DNA of 63,784 bases, counting the filler, from Bigelowiella natans CCMP2755 (taxonomy: Eukaryota > Protista > Cercozoa), in the NCBI GenBank assembly GCA_000320545.1. It is 4 parts of 4 records of this genome, joined end to end, with 100 filler letters (N's around TTAATTAATTAA, not from the genome) between each part and the next. Parts side by side here need not be neighbours in the genome. Positions count along the whole stretch, not along the records: positions 27,941 to 56,582 come from ADNK01002196.1; 3 more parts are not named here. One strand, given 5' to 3'. The notes below the pieces were generated by a model. It searched no databases and was not told the origin of the DNA. It saw nothing but the letters and a program-made list of their open reading frames with translations. Shown in pieces: positions 30,850-51,199 of this stretch (positions within the stretch are counted from its first letter, which is position 1; each line of letters starts with the position of its first letter). Made by a program: the position numbers and the translations under genes.

Positions 30850-31900
30850 GGAATTAGACGCAAGGCGACTTCCTTGCTAGCTTGCATTTGTTACATGCAC
30901 TCGCCGGCTGCATACACGGCGCCAAAATCTACATTTCATGTCGCGTACGTAAGTTGAGGATGGGGGTGTACATCACATCTTGACAAACTAAATGACAAAG
31001 GATGCTTCCAAATAGATGCGGTAGTGTACGATTCCTGTTGCTGCACGCCATGCATGCATGGATTGTGCGACGAAGTTGCGCGCTGCGCGCAGGTCTGCAG
31101 CAGATTAGATGCTTTCCGATTCTGCACGTGCGACAAGTTAACACTCTCTGGCTCCGGTTTGGGATACAAGCGCAAGTGCATCATTGCATATGACAGAGCG
31201 TGGCCTCGTGTCAGTCATTTGGCAATTACCTGATTGCTAGATTTGCAAGGCAGGTCTTTAGTTTTGTGGCCAATAGCTTGACTAGCTACTAGAATCACAT
31301 GCCATATATATAATGCTTAAATGTAGCAATCGAACATATTGTTGTCGCTTGTTGCATGCTATCAGCATACTTCATAGTGTGTGTACGTAATGTGTGTGCA
31401 TCATCTAGGTATGTCTAGCAGAAGTGACAAATTGTGTCCTGCGATCGACAACAATGTTCATTTGCTATTTATTTAATCATCATAGCATGCTAGCTAGCTA
31501 GTGCTCCCAGTCAGCAGTGTCCATAAAGACCTTGCAAATGACAGACATGATGCCACGTGCATATGCAATGATACACTTAATGCGCTTGTAAACAGCGATG
31601 TGGTGTACAACCAAACACACCCTTGCAAAGCGACACTATATTGTGTCACACAACTACATCATGCTGCTGTAGTGTCATGCTCATCATCTCATCATGTTGC
31701 ATTGTTGCACTCAAACTACATGTTAGGGCACACAAAGGTTGCTAGGTTGCGCAATGAAGTCAATTGCGAATTTTTGTTGTCGCTGTGCAGTTCCGTGCTG
31801 ATGCAACAAACAGAGACTCTTGAGCAGGTAGAATTTGTCGTTTGCGTTTGGGTCAGCACTCTGATATCGATGCCGATGTCATCAATCGACTAGTACTAGT
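30850..31900. other. Intergenic island with TG/CA and CTAG enrichment, partial TA loss
   Basis: Non-coding, TG/CA rich, (GCTA)n at 31490-31501, TA reduced but present. Confidence 0.4.
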
Positions 31901-32555: not shown

Positions 32556-35500
32556 TTATATGCGCGTGCATTGGTGAAATAATTCTGTGCAATCTGCAGG
32601 GATGGGTGGAGGAGCACGGGGGCGATGACATCGCTATTGTATTTCGTAGTATTAGGAGGAGGGCCGACCAAGGCGGCAGCGCTGTGCTGCGCTATGCCGT
32701 GCCCGAGCGAGTGCGGGTCCTCATCAGGAAGCAGTCCGATGTACTCAAAGGGGGGGTAGAGTGCAAACTCGACGTGCATGGCCAACTCGCGGATGAAGGC
32801 TTTTGGCAGGTTTTTGAACATGGGGACGGTCCTCAGCAGCCGACCGTGGGCCGCGCTGCTGACCGTTCGGCGGAGCCCAGGAGACATCCGCGGCAGAAGG
32901 TCCAGCCACCTGGAATGGGTTGGGGGGGGTATTTGGGGTGTGCGTGCGCGCGTGCGCACTTGCGTGCATCTAGGTGGTCGTGTGAGTGCTCAGAAGACGA
33001 GAGAAAATGGCGGTTGGTGACAAAGGAGAAACGAGTTGTTTCGGACACAGAAAGCTCTCGTAACGTCTTACGTCGAGACAACGGTGCATGCGCATTAGAA
33101 CCAGAACATCATCAGCTCTCGTCTTCCAATCAATCAGGCGAACAACACGCGCGCGCACGCACCCTTTCGTCGCCCGCATGTCCTTGTCGCGGTAGAGGAA
33201 GATCCTCAGCGCGCGCCGCAGCCCATCGTCGAAGCCGTGGGACTCCATGAATTTGTTAAGGTCGTCCATGTTCATGATGAACTCCATATCCATTTGTTTG
33301 CGCAGGCTGCTTATCGAGCTCGCACTTCCAATGATGTATGTCCATGTCGCGCCGACTACGACCATAAAAATGGCGCTGCTAAAGAACTCCAGCGTGTTGA
33401 CCTGCAGCGAGAGGGGGTGCTTGTTAGGGAGGTGGTATCGTTTGCTGTGTTGGTCTTTGGTCTCGTACGAAATCAAAGGAAGGGTGCAAAATCTCACGAG
33501 TCGCCGGAAGAAAACATATGAGCTGTTATCGCTATCTTTTCCTCTTTGGAAGTGCTCTCTCCCGCCTCTCGTCTCTATTTGCTTTACCGGCATTGCGATG
33601 TCGCCGTATCCTATGGTTGTGAGGGTCATCACGGACCAATGTAGCGACCGTGCATACAGAGCGACTCCGTTGAAGTCCTCGCCAGTTTCCGCGGATAGCG
33701 TTTTGATCCATGTGTTGTTGTATCTGTCGTTGTGGCGTTGTTGTTTTTGATGTTGTTGTCGCACATTTTTGTTGCATTTTCGCAGTGTGTGAGTCAATGA
33801 CGACGACTGCGAAGGACTGTCTGTACTGCAGAATTTCATTTTTTTGGTGAGGATGTTTGTTGATTCTGTGTGTGGTGCGGAAAAGCGATATAGGCTGCAC
33901 GTTCCTTGTGCGTGCAAATATTTGTGTATTGGTCTAGCCCCCACACCCCCTGTTCTATCGGGCAATCGAAATGAAATGAAAGACTTTTTTTTTTCCAAAA
34001 GCATTGGATGGACGCATGCTGGGAAGCAATTCTGGCTTAGTACGGTACTATTCTTCATGGTCGCTCTCTGTTCATCATCTTCTCAGTCAAAACTTACATT
34101 TTCGTCTTCCCAATAGTGATCCAGAAGCACGCCCCCCAGTGTGCCACCAGCGCGGCCAACGCTACTAGTTGCAATAGATTGAGCATCATAACATTAAACC
34201 GAAGGAAGAAGACGCTCCATCTCTCCAATATCCGTCCAATACGCAAGATTCTCAGCAGTTTTAGGCAGCGAAAATACAGCAAAATGCGGAGGGCGTCGCC
34301 GTCATTCTCCACAAATAACTCGAAGGGCAGCACCGAGATGACGTCGATGGAAAACCACCCGCGAAGGTATTTCGCAATGGACTTGCTACGATTCTCTTCT
34401 AGGCTGACGACATCGCCCTCTTCCCAGTTCATGTTCTCCGCAGCCAAGTTGAAGTGGATTAAAATATCAAATGTGAAGATCAAGTCGATGATGTAGCCCA
34501 CCACGAGCAAGAACATCGACGAGTTCCGCTCGATCAGAGCTACTTCCAGAGGGGTCACCAGCGCCACATATACCTGCCAACGAATAAGGGACGAGAAGGG
34601 CAATTGAGAACTTAATAGTAGCTATGAGAGAGTCATCGCAGCAAATGGAGACGAGGTAGCAAAAAGGTGCATAAAATAAACAAGAGAAAGATCGGATGGG
34701 GAAGTTCTTTGGGGTGCTGACTTACAATGGAACAGAACGTTAAAACATCCCACTTCACCAGATCTGCAGGTCTTGAAAATATATAAAAGCATTTTTTGGT
34801 TCGATAAAACACACCATGCGGATTATGACGACAATGTAATTTACAAGATGTAGGTTGCTCTCAATAAACCAACCGAAGTATGCCGACAAAAGCAATAATT
34901 GCCTTCCACCAAGCGCACATGAACCTGATAAATAAACCAATCATCGGTCTCCAGACGATTTTAATAAGAAAACCCTCGCGGACCTTCGTTCTGAAGTTAC
35001 ATCCTTTGGATCCATAATTTTCTGCGCGATTGTTTGCTGGCGCTGGAGGTAGTTTCGTCTGTTAAATGCTGCTGTATTGTCTTGGAGATCATGGACGCTC
35101 TAGTTATTTTGTTTAAAATATATATTTGTTGGATTCTCTTCAGATTGCATGTGTACGATAGATAGCCTACCTGCAGGAGACTGGGGAATTGCGTATTGAC
35201 CGACAGCCTTCTTTTCGGAGAAGGCGCACTTATCTGACTTTGTTTCCTTTCTCCGTGCTTGTCTGCGCAGCAGTGTTCGATTAGTTTGAGATGTACTTTC
35301 AGCAGGGAAGGAATGACATGCACGAAAAACTCAATTTTCGAGAAATAATCGAAAATAGGTGCAGGAGTATATCACCATGGAGGCTGTAATTAATGCTATT
35401 GCGCAGAATTTTACGTTCATGATGATCGCCCGAGACCAATGCAGGGAATTTCTGGAGTCGAACACGTACCCATCTCTCCCTCTAGTTTCATGCTACATAC

Positions 35501-40346: not shown

Positions 40347-41099
40347 TGTGATGTATACATTCCTTCAGGCGGCAGCTTGATCGCGAGCGCTTGTCTCGTC
40401 AACTCGATGCAAAATGCGGATGTGGAGAGGGTCCTCAAAAGGTGCAAATAACAGAGGATTTCGGTGGAATTTGGACGCCATCACGATCACCACCGTCATC
40501 ACCGCCGCCGCAACTTCTCATCGTTGCCTTGTACGACAGGTTTCCTTTCACCGCGAAGGGTGATGACAGAGAAGGGGGGGGGGCAGGTGAAGAGGCCCAG
40601 CAAATCGATACCGACCGCTTGGGTTGATCGGTGCTGTACCGCAATGGCGAAAATAACAGATCCCAAGATAGGAGTAGCAGCTAGAGCATTATAGAAGGGA
40701 ACACGGTAGTAGTAGTTGTGCCGTAATTCCAGGAGGAGGGGGAAAGAGGGGGGGGAGGAGGATGCGCAAGGGAAAAGGATACCAGTTGTTAGCAGCAATG
40801 GCTAACTTTTGAAACTAAGCGACGAATATACGCATTATAGCAGCGCAAATTAGGTCGAAGATCGAACGGCATGATAGAATATACTTATTACATTTTACAC
40901 TACGTGCAAGCTCTTTTAGCGACTTCAACCTCGGTAGAGTTAGTTGTAGGGCCATCTGCACATCGTTGGGTTGAATTATCAGCTTTTACTATTCGACGTA
41001 CCGCCGGACCACAAGCTTGCTGTGTGAGGCCATGCATACACTAGCTTTCCAAGTACGTCATTGCTAATTTATATAATTTGGGAGTTCGAAAAAATCGAC

Positions 41100-42000
41100 A
41101 TCCAGGATAGATGTAAAATGCTGCCGTGTGCGAGGTCGCAGGTGGTCGTATCGCTAAGCATGATGTTTGTCGCATGTTTGTCGCCTATTTGTTGCTTCGG
41201 GGGGGCTAGGGGGGCTAGAGGGGCTAGCAGTGATAGCTAGCTAGAGTGCCAACTAGCTAGCTAGCCAATGCTAGAACGTTAAAACGGCCTTCTCGTAGTC
41301 ATAGTAACCCAGGACTTATTATAACAGCTAAAGACTCTACCTAATCTAGTAATGCGACACGGTGCGCAGCGCTACGCACAGTGCTAGTGCTAGCTAGCTA
41401 GCTGGAGTGGATGACATAGCTAGTTGTATGGCTACAAGTACTTGCTTGCAAGCTTGCATGATCATTTGCTGCATCTGCCTTGCTGCTCTAGCGCGCTAGC
41501 TAGCTTGCATGTACGGGCGCCTGCAGATGTGACATAGAGATAGCTGCGCCGCAGTTGCTTGCTGGCTGCTTAGCTGACTAGTTACGTACTTATTGCCGTG
41601 CCCTCAAAGCGCACAGCATGCATTTCCATAGCATGCTGCTAGTCCAACATGCACTGGCCCATGCTAGCAACAACAGGGCTAGATGGCATGGCTGCCGCAG
41701 TCTAGCAGTTCTAGAGTTGCTGACTAATAGCTGTACGTTGACACTATAAGAAATCTGTAGCTATATAGCTAGCTAGCTAGATAGTGCTGCGGTCTAGCGG
41801 TGGCACTTCTTTGCCCATCGCGTCGATTTCCACAGTACAGTTTCACAGCGCTACGTAAAATACTCAAGCGATCTTGCAACAATACATCGCGCATGCACCT
41901 CACTAGATGATATTGCTGTGTCTATTATCTAGCTCCGTATTCATACGTCAGAGATGATTAACAAACTAGCAAGCCCCATCCATGTCGTCATCGTATTCAT
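41100..42000. other. CTAG-enriched intergenic island
   Basis: About 30 CTAG in 41161-41940 by manual count versus about 3 expected by chance; non-coding. Confidence 0.75.
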
Positions 42001-42606: not shown

Positions 42607-45600
42607 GACAGACAGACAGACCGACAGACAGACGAGGAGGGGGAGAGGGAGAGCACGCGAGAGAGAGGGTGCGGGAGAGAACCTGCATGACTCGAGTAGG
42701 AAGCAGCCGCAGCCGATTGCTGGGCAGTTGCTCCTGCTGCTGCTGATGCTGCAGCTCCTGTGCTATAAGCTGTTACATCCTGTGCCGTGCTTGCTATCGC
42801 TGCTTCCGTGGAAACTTGGCTCTGATCGGCGCCACTCGCCAGGCCTTCCGTAGACGATACTGCACCGACCTCTTGCTTGATCTGCTGCTGATGGGAAGAC
42901 GCTATAGTGCTTGCTGTTGACGAGGTTGGAGAATGAACGTAGCTTGCCTACGGTGCGCAGAGACGGCAAAGCAATGCAACTCAGCGAAGGGAAAAGATCA
43001 ATTTTGACAGGGATGATCATGGACGATCGGGCGACAACAACACTGTCCCCTGCCTAATCCTCGTTTTAACGAAAAATATTTGTGCCCAAAGGAACCGGGA
43101 TGAAACACGAAGATTAGGGGAGGGGGGGAAATGCAAAATTGGAACGATAGTCGCTCACTGAAAGGCGTGTTTGTCACAGTGGAGCTTACCAAAGGCCTTT
43201 TCTTCTCGAAAGACAAGAGAGGCGTGATAGTTGGGAATCGTTTCTGAATCGATTGTACGTCCTCCAGGCTCGGCGCATAATCACTTGCGTACTCTAGATA
43301 AAAGGAGGCTAGCACTTCCCTGTCCTGGGCCTGAAGCTTCGAATCTTCCGCTAACGCACGCTCGAAGATAGGCTTGATCTTATCAGTGTAGCTGGAGGAT
43401 ACGGAGTCCTCAAACGTAACGTACGCGAGCCAAAGGTCAGCACAATCTGTTCGATGCCTGAGGGCCTCTTCATAGATCTCACGTGCCCTGTTCGCATCCT
43501 TCTTGATCTTCGCGTAGAACTTGCCGGCGTTGACAGCTAGGAGAGGGATTTCCTCGAAGTTTGCTCCCTCCAACGCCGCGTCGTAGATCTTGCACGCTTC
43601 CTCTACATTTCCCCGTCGCCGCTCAAAGTTGGTTAGGTTTACGAGCCCTTGCACGAGACCGGGGGAGACATTCTCTAGAATGTGCTGGTAGATTCCCCGT
43701 GCCTGTTCTATATTGCCGTGTCTCTCCTCGAACAGCGCGTACTCCAAGAAGCATTCAGGCCTGGAAAATAGAAACGGATGTTGGTGATGATGTGATGTGA
43801 TGATGATGCTAATGTTGAAATCTCCTAAATTTTGCACCCCCCAGGATTTCACGTATCCCCCCGCCACCACCCTGATGCTTCATTGTCATCATCTCCCTAT
43901 TTTTTTGGGTTTCTTCTTCTTGTCTAATCACATACTGGCGTTTGGTGAAAATGCTCGTGGCCCGATTGTAGATGCTCCTAGCGTCAGCAACACCCGTCTC
44001 AAGGCCTTGGCCTTCAACAAACGTGGCGAATCGTATCCAGAACTCTGGGTAGTTGGCGCACGCAATGAGACAGCGCTCGTAGATCTTCACCGTCATGGGC
44101 CTAAATTGCTTGGCATCTTCTCGCACCCGTGCCTCACAGAAGTCCAGGTAGGAGTGCCAGTTCGATATGTCACTTTCGTTGAGGTCTTTGACGTGGAAAT
44201 AGGCTCGGGCGATGCGGTTCTCGAAGTAGTCTAGAGTTTCCTTTTCCAGCTTCGTCTTCAGATACACCTCTTTATGCTCCGCCATAATCTCATTGCGGTA
44301 CTTCTCGCTCTCTTCCACGCTGCTGGGGTTAAAGTCGCGTCCTGCCAATTCAGACAGTAGGTCCTTGACCGGGCGTTTGGATGCGAACTCCTCATACTTC
44401 TTGTAGTATTCATCTAGCATGGCCAGCGGCGTGCGAAGGATGCGCAGGTAAATCCCTGCGGCTCTTTGGTTCTCATCATGGCTAGTTTCGAACTCGATAT
44501 ATTTGTTCCAAAACTGATGTGATTGAAAGTCGGACCCGATTACCTTAGCGGCGCGCTCAAATCGCCTAGTTAGTCGGATTCAATAACATGTGGGTGCGCG
44601 GGGGGTGGCATAAACAAAACAAGTCAGAAAACAACGCGTTTCATGCAAAGAACATTATGGCGTACTATAAGAATTTTCAGTTGTGTAGAATTGCTGTTCG
44701 GATAACAACGCTCACCACCTTCTAGTTTCTGCTATTAAATCATCGTTCTCCGAGTCCATATCGATGGAGCAGTAGTATGTCCACATCTCATGGCAGTGCT
44801 CAGCTGCAGCGACGCCTTCTTCGCACACTTGCAGCTGGAGATTGGCGTGCCCGTAGCGCTTTTCGAGCTCGGCTAACTTTGTCCAATATCCGTAGCAAAA
44901 CGGGTATTCTTTTAGCAAAGCGCGAAGACACTCGCTGAGAGCCTTATAGTCGTCCTGAGTCGATCCATTGGGAATGGAGGTGGAAGGGAGAGAAGGGAAG
45001 GGAAATAGAAGGAACCAAAATGCCAATGATTAGTTTTTCGACAAGATTAGCATGTATAGGCGGAAGCCGGTACCAGCGGATTGTTACATCCTCCTTCATT
45101 CGGCTAAATGACGACGCTATGCTCTTTCCTCCCCCCCCACGAAGTTTGTTGACAACACCGAACGGCCATTAGGAGTAGGAATCATGAGGCTGCTGTTGCT
45201 GCGGCAATAGTAGTGGCTACGGCTACTGCAGCTATTCTGATTTGAATTTGGTAAAGAAACGGGCTACAATAAGTCTGATTGTGTACCTTCTGTTCCAAAC
45301 GTGAAGCTAGGCTAACCCAGGTGTCAAAATGTTCGGGATTTTCCTGTACTTCTTTCCACATCTTCTCCTCCTCAGATAGTTCTTTCGGTTTCGGAGGTTC
45401 CTCAGCTTTTACAGTGACAGCTGTCACCTCCTCGTTTTCAGTCTTTACTGCGTCCCTAGAATCCTCAGCAGTTTCTGGTTGAGTTGTGGTATCTTTCGTT
45501 GGAGAAGGAGGCGGGGCGGGCGCAGGCGCGGGTGCGGGTTCCCGTGGGGGTGCAGGTGTTGATTCTGTGTCCACTTCCATGCTTGATGGCTCGTCACTCT

Positions 45601-46128
45601 TCATATCGCCCTTTTCTTCGACAGTAAGTTTTTCGTCCATCGTTGATGTGGAAGACCCTTTTTTCTTTGAGGTCCTTTTTTCATCGCCACTATCATCTAC
45701 ATCATTAGATTTCCTAGTTCGGCGTCGCTTTCGCCTCTTTCGTCCTGTGTACATTAAATAAACCATTTTTAATATTTCTATGATCACGACCAGAAGGTAC
45801 AAGATGAAAGACTAATTTCATTTCGGACTTCCGCTGATAGTATGTTCCACCAAGTTTTCTCCAGCTTGCTGAATCCTCTCGTAAGAGGCGGCAAATTATT
45901 CATGCCGAGTTGAATACTAGCAGCATTTTCTTAAAAAAACTCTTTTCTACCTTTATCATTTAGACGCCTAAGCATAATGCTCTCCATTGCCGCCATCTTA
46001 AGCTTCATTTCCTGGTACATCTTTAGCATGTCCTGGCTATCGTCTTCGTCTTCATCTTCGTCCTCATCCTCGTCGAACCGATTTTCATCGTCCTCCAGCT
46101 TCCCCCTTTTTCGAGATCCTCGCCCCAT
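42238..46128 (-). CDS. PRPF39: Pre-mRNA processing factor 39 (U1 snRNP-associated HAT-repeat protein)
   Basis: WKEVQENPEHFDTWVSL, LLKEYPFCYGYWTKLAELE, FENRIARAYFHVKDL...NWHSYLDF, IYERCLIACANYPEFWIRFA, FEERHGNIEQAR; acidic N-terminal extension and Tyr/Gln-rich C-terminus YYQQYGYAYPGY; stop 42238-42240. Confidence 0.92.
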
Positions 46129-46742
46129 GCTGTAAGTTTAGAAGGAAGGCCTGCGAGTGAGTGCGCCGCCGCGTGCAACTAAATTGGGTTTTTAGTCACA
46201 GAGGAAGAGAGTTCAGATTCCAATGTTGGAACCTGCTATATCTTCATCCTGATAAATTGCGATAATGAACCGATTTTTTCATGTCTTCATACTTAAATAA
46301 TGTATATTTTTATATTTAGCATCTGAGATGTAATTTCCTCGCTCTTGAAATCCTCTCATTGCGCATCTCGCAGGGGAATCCCAATCGAATTACCGGTGAT
46401 TGAAGCACAAATAGGAGAAAGCTCCAGTATTCGTAGATTTGGACCTGTCGCTCTGGAGAATAAATATGTTCCAGATTCGCAGGGAAATTCCTTCAAAATA
46501 CGATAGGAAGGCTCATTCATACCTAATTTTCCAATGCATTTCCCCAATTTTTCATTCTAGAAATGCCTGTGATTAAAGGTAAAAATGTCTTCCATTTGTA
46601 AGACGGTGTTATAATATTAAGGGAATTTGGGAAGTTGTATACTCCTACAATATTCTTCTCGGCATATCGGCGAATTGTCTCTGTCGGTGAAATACTTAGG
46701 ACAAGTAATAAAGCGGCCGGCAGCGCACGGACCTCAGGCAAC

Positions 46743-47790
46743 ATGGTAGTTCTACGAAGATGTTCAGCAGTTGGGGAGGGTGTTAGATATAAATAGGGCA
46801 GAATTAAATGGGGAAGCGTTGTAAAGTTGAGATATAAAATGGGCGAATATCATTCACAGATCACAAAGTTTTAGAGATAGTAGCCAGTAGGGAAGAAAAC
46901 ATTCATACATGTGCCAAATTAACGAATATAGAACGAGGAATTGCGTTGGTCAAAATGTTACAATATAGCTTGCATCCATAGAAACATTCTTGCTCACACT
47001 CATTATTCTCTTGTGTTATTTTCAATTACAGGCGAAAGGACGCAGGGTTGCAGCAAACAAAAAAAGCAAGGCGGAGACCAAGCATGCCCACCTCTTCAAG
47101 AAGACCCCAAAGGACTTCCGCATCGGTCGCTCTGTGCAACCAAAACAGAACCTTAGCCGCTTCGTAAAATGGCCTCGATACATCCGTATCCAGAGGCAAA
47201 AGGCTATTCTTAAGCAGAGGCTTCGTGTCCCTCCTGCTGTCAACCAGTTCACCAACACAATTGACAAAAACCAGGCTATGACTCTCTTTAAACTTCTCGC
47301 CAAATACCGCCCTGAGAACAGGAAAGAGAAACAGGAGCGTTTGAAGGCTATCGCTGAAGAGAAGGTTAAAAATGCTAAGTCGGGCAATAAGGACAAGCCA
47401 AAGGTCCTGAAGTACGGTCTAAACCATATCACTAGCCTCGTTGAGAGCCGAAAGGCTAAACTCGTCGTAATTGCTCACGACGTCGATCCTATCGAGATGG
47501 TGATCTGGCTTCCTACCCTCTGCCGTAAGATGAAGGTTCCTTTCTGCATCGTAAAGGGAAAGGCTCGTCTTGGCGCTCTTTGTCACATGAAGACTTGCAC
47601 CGCAGTCGCTATTACCGATGTTGAAAAGCAAGATGATCGTGCCCTTAACCAGTTTGTTGCTTCCGTTGCACCTATGTATGAAGAAGCTCCACGCGCATGG
47701 GGTGCTGTTGGTTTCGGTATCAAGTCTCGCCACAAGATCCGTGCTCGCCAAAGGGAATTGGAGAAGGAAAAGGCCAAGAGATTTGGTTAA
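46743..47790 (+). CDS. RPL7A: 60S ribosomal protein L7a (eL8); exon 1 is the ATG only, exon 2 47032-47790
   Basis: FVKWPRYIRIQRQKAILKQRLRVPPAVNQF, LKYGLNHIT, LVVIAHDVDPIE, PFCIVKGKARLG; ATG|GTAGTT donor at 46746 and TTACAG acceptor at 47031. Confidence 0.97.
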
Positions 47791-48399
47791 CTTTCTTAGG
47801 ATGATAATACGGATTCGTGATGGAAAATTTTTGACGACTTCACATGATAGGCTAAGGAATTATGAATCTTTGAATTTATTAAGGAGACTCCGTCGTTGCA
47901 GCGACGTTTGGTGATAATAGTACGCATGTGTGCAGTGCAATTTTACATCAACATCTGTTATCTCAATTGATGATGAAACACCAATCGAGTAGTACAGCAT
48001 GCACAATCAAATAGCCAACATTTCTGCGCCATTAGTATGCAGCGCGGGCAGAGACGAAGCCGTAAGGGCTCATAAAAAATGCGGTGCTTCACATTAATGT
48101 TATCTATCCGGCTCTACTAGTCTAGTAGCTAGTAACTGTGTGAGACGGATGTAATGAAAGCATTTAAAAATTTTCAATTGTCATCCTAATGTAGCTGTGC
48201 AATGCAGCGGCTACAGCGCCTAAATTGTATCTGTTTGTTTCCTTTGTCACATGTTGCATGCTAGCATGCTTATTGCATGAAAATGCATTGCATGCGATTT
48301 GATCTGTGATCTGTCGATCATGCTAGCATGTCGTGCTTCATTGTTTGCGCGTTTGCGCGCAGCACCGCGAGTTCTTTTTTCTGCAATTGAGAGGCGTTT

Positions 48400-50009
48400 T
48401 GTTTTGTCGTTGCGGTCGACACATCGACGACATGCATGGCCGTCATGCAGTTGTTTGTTGAAGCTGAGTCTTTCTAGCTTTGAGGTCCGCATTTCCTGCA
48501 TTTCAAAAGATGGCTAGATGGTCCTCATCTTGCAGCATGTCACATGCGTTGCATGTCGCTTCTGTTTGTGTGCATTGTCCTCTGGACATCGTGAAGGTCC
48601 CAAGGTTGCGCCAAGATCACAAATGGCTCGCATCCATGATGGCGGTAGCTAGCAACCATGCTAGTGGATGCACAACACATGCACGCAGTAATTTTTTCAC
48701 ACACAAAGTTGACACGCACGCTGACTGGTGCGTGGGGTGGACGGGCGGGTGTGGTTCGTGAGAACGTGAACCTGGACAACGCACAGATGCACAACAAATG
48801 CCTGTGCACATCGCACACACATGTTGTGTTGCACATGTCCATCGTTGTCTGGCCATCACGCACTGAATCGTGCAATGCACCTTGAGATGGTGCCTCCTGC
48901 GATGACCTGCACGCTTGCTAGCTTGTGATGCATGTGATCGATGCATGCAACACGTGCTTTGTCCACAGTCGTGCAGTCATGCATCGCATGCAGTGTCGAT
49001 CTTCAGTTTGCTGCACATTCAACTGCACGAGGATTCATCTCACGTGCTGGCATCGCATGGCAAATTGCCCCAAATCCAATTGGCACAAGCTGACGCAAGT
49101 CAGCATGTTCCAACGGGCACGCCAGTGTGATCGATGAATTGATCGCAGTGGCATGCACGTTGTCCGCAATGCCAGAATGGCACACATTTGTTTGCCAACA
49201 GTCGCCACTTTTTTGATGCAAACGTCAAAGCCAACAGCTGCCCGATGCTTGTCTTGCTGACACCACTTTGACGCAATGGACATGCGCACGTGTCCGTGGT
49301 TGATGAGACATCATTGAATCATTTTGACATCACGTTCTCCATGAACGTGCAGTGTCAACACGTTTTTGGTCGCTCGGTGGGTCTGGACACTGGCAGGTGG
49401 TCGGGATCAAAACGTCAAAACACTCTGATGTTGTTGTTCTCCAATGTCAGCCTTTGGGCTTCGTGAAATCCGAACAATTTGCACAATGATCCTCAGTGTT
49501 TCCCACATCTCCAGTGGAGTTGAAAAACACACCCCTCCTAGCCTCCCTTTCCAGAGCCCTTTGACCCCTTGCCAGCTTGGCCGTGATGCGCCTTGCGAGG
49601 AAAGCGCAGGAAGCAGAAATCGAGGCCCCATCGTGGTGCGACAACGATCATGCCATCATCTAGTCATCTAGTCATCCCCGTGGCGGATGGCAAAATCAAA
49701 TTGGCGACGCACGTGTGCCACACTGACTGCCCATCACTGATTCAGCTAGGTGACTTTTGTTGTCATGCAAAGTTGTGCATGAGTTTTCCTTGTCTCCCAT
49801 CTCACGCTAGCACGCCATCATGGAGTGGAACAGTGGAACATCTAGCAACAGGAGTGACAGGAGCGACACAAATCTGCGAACAAGTGTTGTGCCTGAGCTC
49901 GAGGGAAAGCATGCTCTGAGGGTGCCTTGGGTGAATCAGTGGTGAAGAAAGAGAGAAAAAATTGTTTCTGTTGGCTGCAGGGATCATGGGACACGTTGGC
50001 ACGCTGACG
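48400..50009. other. TA-depleted island 3 (unidentified relic sequence)
   Basis: 48721-50040 contains 7 TA, all within CTAG; CG present at about 3 per 60 bp in the lines counted. Confidence 0.8.
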
Positions 50010-50125
50010 AATGAATGAATGAACAATGAACAATGATGACAAACTACATTTCCAAAGTGTTGCACCAAGACACTTGCAGTGTGCGAACTGGCGCAGTGCC
50101 TTGAACTGACTTCAGTGAGGTCCAA
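50010..50125 (-). mobile_element. 3'-end copy of the same LINE as 11955-12645
   Basis: GAATGAATGAACAATGAACAATGATGACAAACTACATTTCCAAAGTGTTGC...GCAGTGCCTTGAACTGACTTCAGTGAGG aligns to about 12000-12095. Confidence 0.8.
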
Positions 50126-50129
50126 CTGG

Positions 50130-50330
50130 TGAAACCAGAAGGAATCAAGAATGGCATTCTGGCCATCGAGGAGTATGGAGATCTCCTTTCAGGACTGAGA
50201 GATCTTCTTCTAGGACTAGGGGGATCTTCTTCTCCGATCCCTCGTTCCATGCCGGTCACGATCCCTGGCATCGTCAAGCCTGAGTTGATTCATCCGCAAA
50301 TGACTCACCCCGGTCGACTCGCCATCACAA
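50130..50330 (-). other. RS-dipeptide-rich coding-like fragment, status unknown
   Basis: Minus strand reads DARDRDRHGTRDRRRRSP then, after a 1-nt shift in a C run, SPRRRSLSPERRSPY. Confidence 0.25.
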
Positions 50331-51199
50331 GCGACGATTTCTTGGTGACGACTACGGATGAAGAAGGATTCTCTCACGAAACGAGAGGGGAAACATGCAA
50401 CTTTTTTGGGTCGTTACAAAGAGAAGAAGATGGTCGCCACCGTTGCCCAAATCGACACCGGTAACAGCCAACAACATCTGAAAATGAAGTTCGACATGTT
50501 CGAGTCGTAGGGTGTGTTTTAGATAAATATTACAGGGTATTTTGACGGTGCGTCAACATATATTTCTGAAAATGTTAATTTCGGCCCGTTTTGCGTGTTG
50601 CCAGTATCTTTGCGAAGATTCAGATCTTTGCTCTAGTCTACCCTGCCCTGCCCCCACGTGCCCCTTCATCCTTGTGACATACGACCAAAATCTAAGGGTC
50701 TGCGTCAAAATAGCTGGGCTTTAGTAGGCACCCACCCCTGCAGAATGCCGCAAAATGGTTCAAGTAACTATGCTTTCACTCCCCAGCCAAAGGTTAGTGT
50801 GCAAGAATTCCTCACCAAGCTTGTCCTGTTTTTCAGAAGGGGAGGGGTGTTGGGTGTTGATGATGTCCAGTTTCTACCCTCTTTTTTGGACTTTGGTGAT
50901 TCATTTTGCCCTTGTACATGTTGCGCTAGATCCGAGAACAACTCACAATTTGCATCCTGTTGCCATCTTTCATCAACATGTTAGAAATTCCAGCTGGGCA
51001 AAGGGATGGCGATGAGCTTCAGCGAAAGGCCATCGAGGAATGTACGAAATTCTACTGCATTCGCTCGAGAATCTTTTTCAGAGGTGATTAGTGCTCTCTA
51101 CGACGCGAAATGCCATATATGTTCATTAACATTTACCCCCTTACCAAATTATCAAAGACGCCATCGTACCGGCCGGGAAGCTCAAACACGGTCTCTCTA

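Follow-up and report, generated by a model that had tools for sequence, protein, structure and literature searches.

The closest known counterpart of the island reported here comes from the same species. Mettrop et al. (April 2026) described how integrated viral DNA is hypermutated at TpA in Bigelowiella natans (bioRxiv 10.64898/2026.01.13.699255): 231 of the 302 nuclear single-nucleotide mutations in their mutation-accumulation lines fell in a giant-virus region and a virophage region, the rate in two viral inserts was about 6e-7 per site per generation, and 230 of the 231 hypermutations were reported as A>G or T>C at TpA. The same preprint lists 124 clusters genome-wide in which TpA is low and CpA+TpG is high, called where at least three consecutive 1-kb windows show a Rho_TpA no higher than 0.43 together with a Rho_CpA+TpG no lower than 1.52. 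It proposes that adenine in DNA is deaminated, the sole candidate enzyme being the ADAT2 homologue Bn78255, picked out by homology, and ties the process to foreign DNA without making this a requirement, 78 of the 96 genes in the clusters being unannotated. The accessible parts of its text and supplements contain nothing on CTAG, tetranucleotides or wider context, CTAG occurring there only in barcodes. Here we describe an island of 1773 bp (48272-50044) in which TpA (hereafter TA) has almost vanished outside the palindromic word CTAG. It lies in a window of 63,784 nucleotides, the whole stretch of B. natans CCMP2755 DNA that was analysed, within the piece at 27941-56582 (ADNK01002196.1); the other 26.9 kb of this piece serve as the background.

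Listing every TA fixed the limits of the island (Table 1), which has a guanine-plus-cytosine (GC) content of 0.505 and holds 14 TA, 12 of them enclosed by CTAG. The initial annotation had counted seven TA in the segment 48721-50040 (1320 bp), all within CTAG, with CG at about 3 per 60 bp; an exact recount agrees on both points, seven of seven TA lying in CTAG and the 64 CG amounting to 2.9 per 60 bp. The segment is near-even in composition (A 319, C 335, G 343, T 323) and its observed/expected ratios are 0.09 for TA, 1.73 for CA, 1.85 for TG and 0.74 for CG; AA, CA and GA are not depleted, the depletion being limited to TA. A 600-bp profile along the piece finds one such island, with TA observed/expected of 0.03-0.20 against 0.43-1.5 elsewhere and GC of about 0.51 against 0.42-0.46 in the flanks. 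The left edge is abrupt (the 180 bp preceding 48272 hold 22 TA), and its sharpness suggests a discrete targeted unit. CTAG makes up 7.0% of TA in the background, or 4.9% when two CTAG-rich stretches are set aside, and from these shares the probability of seven out of seven is 8e-9 to 6e-10; that of at least 11 out of 13 is about 1e-11 to 2e-13, and the actual 12 out of 14 is even more extreme. Outside CTAG, two TA are observed in the island where 86.8 are expected. CTAG itself is mildly enriched, with 12 observed against 4.4-6.5 expected (P 0.002-0.035) and a density 1.8-2.8 times that in the rest of the piece. The depletion of TA, with CTAG as its almost exclusive refuge, is confirmed and is stronger than had been stated at first.

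The composition of the island points to conversion of TA. The pooled density of TAN and TGN on both strands is, for each following base, 0.75-1.19 times that in the rest of the piece; with the pool at background density, TA appears to have been converted and not absent from the start. The TA share of this pool falls from 0.35-0.49 in the rest of the piece to 0-0.014 in the island for N = A, C or T. CA and TG together are enriched about 1.8-fold, an excess that matches the missing TA, and TGCA, CATG and CACA are enriched three-fold, which fits conversion because TATA turns into such words. About 125 conversions in 1773 bp would account for a rise in GC from about 44% to 50.5%, the genome mean being 44.9% (bioRxiv 10.64898/2026.01.13.699255). 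The direction A:T>G:C fits both the mass balance and the rise in GC, with the ancestral composition borrowed from the neighbouring 27 kb. CA (187) and TG (207) are balanced and lack strand-coordinated runs (runs test, z 1.06); both strands were therefore mutated, site by site, and processive single-strand editing was rejected on the same test.

From these properties we infer that the island was made by the known B. natans mutator. Like the published clusters, it has the signature of TpA>TpG/CpA on both strands, a loss of TpA that matches the gain of CpA+TpG, a local rise in GC and discrete limits. Its Rho_TpA of 0.13 and Rho_CpA+TpG of 1.78 both lie within the published limits; the 1-kb windows give 0.07-0.21 for the former and, over the left two-thirds, 1.76-1.95 for the latter. 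The cluster rule, which is a matter of detection and not of biology, would not call the island because 1.8 kb fills at most two 1-kb windows; in each of ten phases the longest run of passing windows is at most two. The island is far nearer saturation than the active nucleocytoplasmic large DNA virus insert of the preprint (Rho_TpA 0.13 against 0.45) and, unlike the viral targets described there, it has no detectable viral or transposon open reading frame (ORF). The TpA mutator that the initial annotation supposed has turned out to be real, in that B. natans mutation accumulation gives A:T>G:C almost only at TpA (bioRxiv 10.64898/2026.01.13.699255). As the mutator is already known, the island would be a short, near-saturated new example of its action; short saturated islands in ordinary intergenic spacers escape the rule behind the 124-cluster catalogue, which bears on whether the process is confined to foreign DNA.

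What appears to be new is the immunity of CTAG, that is, a specificity or a mark that reaches the tetranucleotide. TA in the island is spared specifically within CTAG, with the mass balance given above. When each NTAN word is grouped with its two possible products, the TA fraction of the CTAG/CCAG/CTGG family is 0.50 in the island (12/24), where the rest of the piece gives 0.41. For the other nine NTAN families the TA fractions are 0-0.024 in the island against 0.20-0.47 in the rest, with survival at <=0.10 relative to background, half-sites (CTAH, DTAG) included: CTAC/GTAG stands at 1/42 (0.275 in the rest of the piece), ATAG/CTAT at 0/34 (0.283), and CTAA/TTAG at 0/33 (0.249). Assuming a background-like ancestor, a survival of CTAG below 0.7 is disfavoured (P 0.02) and one below 0.5 strongly so (P 0.001). 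We also fitted a Poisson model in which the adenine of xTAy on each strand is converted at a flank-dependent rate; it is crude, its ancestor being the 27 kb of neighbouring sequence. The model without any flank effect is rejected (twice the log-likelihood difference, 54; P 1.7e-13), and the best fit has a CTAG-specific rate multiplier of about 0.006. Penalising C at -2 only (multiplier 0.03) costs 2.6 log-likelihood units relative to the CTAG-specific model, to which single-flank terms add nothing (P 0.42). A rule of G at +1 only was rejected as sufficient, being 10.6 log-likelihood units worse and contradicted by 23 mutations in the TAG context.

These mutations come from Table S2 of the preprint (bioRxiv 10.64898/2026.01.13.699255), which gives the trinucleotide for each mutation and whose contexts we tallied by hand. 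On scaffold 10 (211 mutations), the A>G changes fall at TAA 32, TAC 22, TAG 3 and TAT 34 times and the T>C changes at ATA 33, CTA 17, GTA 30 and TTA 35 times, the others being four T>C outside TpA and one C>T. On scaffold 146 (20 mutations), the A>G changes are TAA 1, TAC 3, TAG 1 and TAT 5 and the T>C changes ATA 4, CTA 2, GTA 1 and TTA 3, with no others; nine TpA events elsewhere include no TAG and no CTA. Read on the deaminated strand, the adenine is followed by G in 23 of 235 TpA events (9.8%), against about 23% by availability (P 1.9e-7). TAG is thus under-used 2.3-fold, with a relative rate of about 0.36 for G at +1, which is therefore disfavoured but not forbidden. Four TA were mutated at both bases in different lines, in the contexts ATAT, GTAC, CTAT and TTAA; the CTAT case (scaffold_10:460652) includes an A>G preceded by C at -2, and a C there is thus no absolute block. 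The same tally shows an asymmetry, A>G at TAG being seen four times against 19 for the complementary T>C at CTA (binomial P 0.0026), with the other three complementary pairs balanced (33/38, 25/31 and 39/37).

The explanation that we favour, and consider probable, is that the TpA hypermutation of B. natans brought the island close to saturation and that CTAG was spared because the mutator reads both flanks of TA. The starting point would have been ordinary-looking, TA-rich non-coding DNA, which TpA-directed A:T>G:C hypermutation would have driven almost to its end point, probably by deamination of the adenine of 5'-TA-3' on either strand to give TA>TG or TA>CA. Some 97-98% of non-CTAG TA would have been converted, with the rise in GC already noted, and the stretch would have filled with TGCA, CATG, CACA and GCATGC, while the TA of CTAG would have been converted at no measurable rate. 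The mutator is envisaged to sense both flanks, a G that follows the A and a C that precedes the T each being disfavoured. CTAG would then have no good strand for loss because, uniquely among TA words, it puts the adenine of either strand into a context that is disfavoured twice over; half-sites would be lost because one good strand remains. Even a single-flank penalty would make CTAG special, because only CTAG shows the penalised flank on both strands. Intrinsic specificity for the tetranucleotide is directly supported by the under-use of TAG in the experimental list, and we suggest that it is the most likely, if not a secure, cause of the immunity. The initial proposal that the mutator is blocked at CTAG accordingly stands as far as the family fractions and the rejection of the flank-free model carry it; it rests on one island of 1.8 kb, TAG contexts as such do mutate, and specificity and mark are indistinguishable here.

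Several observations weigh against reading by both flanks as a complete account. Both single-flank contexts are mutable, as the 23 events at +1 G and one or more A>G changes at a -2 C show. When 0.36 for +1 G is combined with a mild -2 C factor, the predicted survival of CTAG is about 0.2-0.5, and values below 0.5 are those disfavoured in the island (P 0.001); the near-zero decay of CTAG therefore leaves room for an added protecting mark. A CTAG term improves even a multiplicative two-flank model (P 0.015). The count is of 12 CTAG sites in one island, and no ancestral or paralogous copy was found, so single sites are unpolarised and the rest of the piece stands as the ancestral proxy; within the piece, blastn at word size 7 gave nothing above chance for a less mutated homologous copy, and the island is single-copy there. 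Were the ancestor as rich in CTAG as 41141-41740 (40 CTAG per kb), the pattern may reflect slower decay of CTAG and not immunity. Finally, the island has no viral or transposon signature, whereas the preprint links the process to foreign DNA.

The strongest alternative, although in our view a rather unlikely one, keeps the same mutator and the same island and adds a protecting mark: an N6-adenine methyltransferase specific to the palindrome, or a protein that binds CTAG as a dimer, would cover both adenines, so that, by a logic like that of restriction-modification, unmarked TA would be edited and marked CTAG would be immune. N6-methyladenine (6mA) at CTAG is raised here because the spared word is palindromic, and N6-methyladenine, a poor deaminase substrate in ADAR biochemistry, would not be open to hydrolytic deamination. 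An immunity that is palindromic and specific to the tetranucleotide, best described by the CTAG-only model without single-flank terms, would agree with such a mark, as would the loss of half-sites as fully as other contexts and the mutability of both single-flank contexts in the experimental list. A precedent is the algal giant virus AaV, in which CTAG carries 6mA in about 59% of reads (PMC12700378): the palindromic tetranucleotide is the same and the modified base is the adenine that the mutator would attack, but AaV is a viral genome from another host (Aureococcus) and any link would be hypothetical. Several 6mA methyltransferases, each specific to particular strains, are present in giant viruses of B. 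natans (bioRxiv 10.1101/2025.11.19.688996); however, the ChlorV 6mA motifs given in that work are TGCA, CANNNNNNTG and RCGY, not CTAG, and TGCA and CATG are products in the island, not survivors. There is no methyltransferase gene in the piece, and the under-use of TAG already indicates some intrinsic flank preference. Less likely again would be a eukaryotic modify-or-be-edited form of self-marking, in which a CTAG 6mA methyltransferase, of the host or derived from a giant virus, would shield CTAG while the deaminase edits unmarked TA; if true, this would be a deaminase-based analogue of restriction-modification in a nuclear genome.

We regard it as very improbable that CTAG is remade as quickly as it is lost, through C>T changes of the inner cytosine in CCAG/CTGG (or CCGG), for example where this is methylated. 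The raised density of CTAG in the island, compared with the remainder of the piece, would be in keeping with such regeneration, as would the count of CCGG (0 against 2.6 expected, P 0.08), a CpG ratio of 0.74-0.8, and the GC-to-AT bias of 2.65 in the ordinary B. natans mutation spectrum (bioRxiv 10.64898/2026.01.13.699255). Against this, CCAG and CTGG together are not depleted (12 against 9.6 expected), and the other TA words would regrow likewise from their CA/TG products, yet only 2 of about 87 are present. To hold a TA fraction of 50% against <=2%, C>T would have to be faster at CCAG/CTGG than at any other NCAN/NTGN word by a factor of at least about 50, and this too would amount to a specificity of 4 bp. 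Methylation of the CHG type would remake ATAG, GTAG and TTAG too, and a source of the CCWGG type is opposed by the counts, only one of the 12 sites being CTAGG and one CCTAG. The initial idea that CTAG is regenerated from CCAG, CTGG or CCGG thus finds no support. As a separate observation, CpG is mildly low in the island compared with the rest of the piece (about 0.95), and this, with the absence of CCGG (not significant), may point to methylated cytosines in the stretch that was targeted.

Least likely is a functional or compositional element (promoter, non-coding RNA or chromatin domain) in which TA is selected against and CTAG/GCTAGC is retained as binding sites: the position between two genes of the same strand, in a spacer of the kind that would hold regulatory DNA, the frequency of GCTAGC and GCATGC in other intergenic stretches of the piece, and the lack of a foreign-DNA signature in the island would suit it, but the TA>TG/CA mass balance, the rise in GC and an observed mutator of the same signature suffice without selection, other CTAG-rich intergenic stretches keep ordinary non-CTAG TA, no Rfam family matched across the whole piece, and we know of no precedent for selection against one dinucleotide in all contexts but one over 1.8 kb.

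Comparison with more distant systems sets the island apart from each of them. Fungal repeat-induced point mutation (RIP), like the process here, hypermutates locally by transitions directed at a dinucleotide, leaves behind a compositional island and is a supposed genome defence. RIP is C>T, mainly at CpA; it creates TpA and lowers GC. The island is its mirror image in chemistry, having lost TpA, gained CpA/TpG and risen in GC (TA 0.09, CA 1.73, TG 1.85), and a duplication trigger is not evident, the island being single-copy within the piece. ADAR, ADAT2/3, TadA and fungal A-to-I editing share with the mutator the A>G read-out and a strong preference for U/T directly 5' of the edited A, 231 of 235 listed events being at TpA. 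ADAR and fungal sexual-stage A-to-I editing prefer a 3' G (UAG is the best triplet), and in the natural substrate of ADAT2/3 A34 is followed by G35 in several tRNAs. The mutator has no such preference, TAG being used in only 23 of 235 events (P 1.9e-7) and CTAG being spared, and unlike A-to-I RNA editing it acts on chromosomal DNA, edited in place on both strands. The sparing of CTAG and the under-use of TAG thus oppose both the 3' G preference of ADAR and the fungal enzymes and the A34-G35 substrates of ADAT2/3, and the ADAT2-homologue candidate is therefore narrowed or challenged; any enzyme put forward has to reproduce a context that reaches past the dinucleotide and so serves as a fingerprint. 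An ADAT2/3- or TadA-like deaminase would carry the HxE-PCxxC motif; there is no deaminase gene in the piece. APOBEC3 and AID likewise provide deaminase-based innate defence with a short context and hypermutated relics, but they act by C>U and not A>I, at TC, CC or WRC, and leave strand-coordinated clusters, of which the island has none. In bacteria, CTAG is the rarest word of its kind (very-short-patch repair); there too CTAG is special among TA words through context-specific mutation or repair, but with the opposite sign, as it is the sole spared TA word in the island and over-represented in the piece.

Outside the island, CTAG is found 99 times in the whole piece against 75.6 expected from a second-order model. 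A genome-wide ratchet by which CTAG would build up wherever CA/TG are enriched was rejected, the two showing no correlation outside the island (Spearman -0.20, P 0.16). CTAG is very dense in the intergenic stretch 40841-41900, at 16-24 copies in 600 bp, and makes up as much as 44% of the TA there. The stretch also has GCTAGCTAGC runs and, at 41200-41227, a G-rich 9-bp unit that ends in CTA and is present three times; it is not hypermutated now, because its non-CTAG TA is at ordinary levels. A second intergenic stretch, 30941-31840, has CA/TG observed/expected of 1.5-1.85 with near-normal TA (0.56-0.9), and the words GCATGC, CATGCATG and GCTAGC are frequent in it. This could be what remains of old or partial hypermutation, with TA since regained, or else the usual intergenic vocabulary of the genome. 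The same 12-bp perfect palindrome, centred on CTAG, occurs at 48257-48268 and 48319-48330, so that the pair straddles the left edge of the island; CATG/GCATGC words flank both copies.

The piece is eukaryotic nuclear DNA, with intron-containing genes and 57 microsatellite-type arrays. Within the island, ten stop-to-stop ORFs gave no Pfam match at E < 0.01 and the longest has no relatives among 5.8 billion proteins, and protein coding was rejected; so were transposon ends, with neither terminal inverted nor long direct repeats at the island. By the same three tests (Pfam, terminal repeats and protein relatives) a viral or transposon origin finds no signal, and such signals may have been lost because saturating mutation would erase most of them; a foreign origin is neither supported nor excluded. 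A simple-repeat artefact was discarded, as Tandem Repeats Finder gives one 21-bp array only within the island, and so was a (TA)n microsatellite fossil, as there is no long in-phase CA/TG mosaic (the longest is five units). One exact 20-mer searched against public metagenome and transcriptome contigs gave three matches with 21-24 nt aligned, in unrelated contigs of 51-68% GC, which we attribute to chance.

Table 1. Coordinates of the island, its surviving TA sites and the neighbouring genes, numbered along the window
Feature	Position	Strand	Remarks
Voltage-gated-type ion-channel (ion-transport family) gene, two blocks	32970..34603	-	Intron-containing host gene; ordinary dinucleotide content
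PRP39-like HAT-repeat splicing-factor gene, at least three ORF blocks, split into exons	42998..45802	-	Ordinary dinucleotide content
RPL7A (ribosomal protein L7Ae) gene, single exon	46990..47790	+	Pfam PF01248, E 3e-24; upstream neighbour of the island
TpA-depleted, CpA/TpG-enriched island	48272..50044		Non-coding, between RPL7A and possible downstream exon; Rho_TpA 0.13, Rho_CpA+TpG 1.78
Surviving CTAG, hexamer GCTAGC	48323..48326		TA list
Surviving CTAG	48474..48477		TA list
Surviving CTAG	48514..48517		TA list
Non-CTAG survivor GTAG (TA 48646), abutting surviving CTAG 48649-48652	48645..48652		TA list
Surviving CTAG	48661..48664		TA list
Second non-CTAG survivor GTAA (TA 48689)	48688..48691		TA list
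Segment of the initial annotation, seven TA, all in CTAG	48721..50040		TA count; TA at 48919, 49539, 49661, 49669, 49747, 49808, 49843
Surviving CTAG	48918..48921		TA list; followed by a 620-bp run without TA, the longest in the island
Surviving CTAG	49538..49541		TA list
Two surviving CTAG (49660-49663, 49668-49671)	49660..49671		TA list; within a 2.6-copy 8-bp tandem repeat
Surviving CTAG	49746..49749		TA list
Surviving CTAG	49807..49810		TA list
Surviving CTAG	49842..49845		TA list; last TA ahead of the right edge

The RPL7A protein has a 100% protein match, and its closest named relative is from the chlorarachniophyte Amorphochlora amoebiformis (70%), as would fit B. natans or a very close relative of it. 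A transcript contig of 1253 nt (L001, from a JGI transcriptome sample) aligns to 46788-47982 at 99.7%; the transcript thus reaches at least 47982, and the island therefore begins about 300 bp past it. Between two aligned blocks (L001:252-303 against 46714-47038 of the window) the contig has about 46 extra bases, with a partial match to 46714-46746, which could stem from a difference between strains, from a small 5' exon or from an artefact of assembly. On its other side, the spacer that holds the island leads up to a possible exon on the plus strand (about 50129-50464). Within this possible exon, immediately to the right of the island, lies a 21-22-bp tandem repeat of about three copies (50169-50233), and two more CTAG (50210-50213 and 50216-50219) are found within the repeat.

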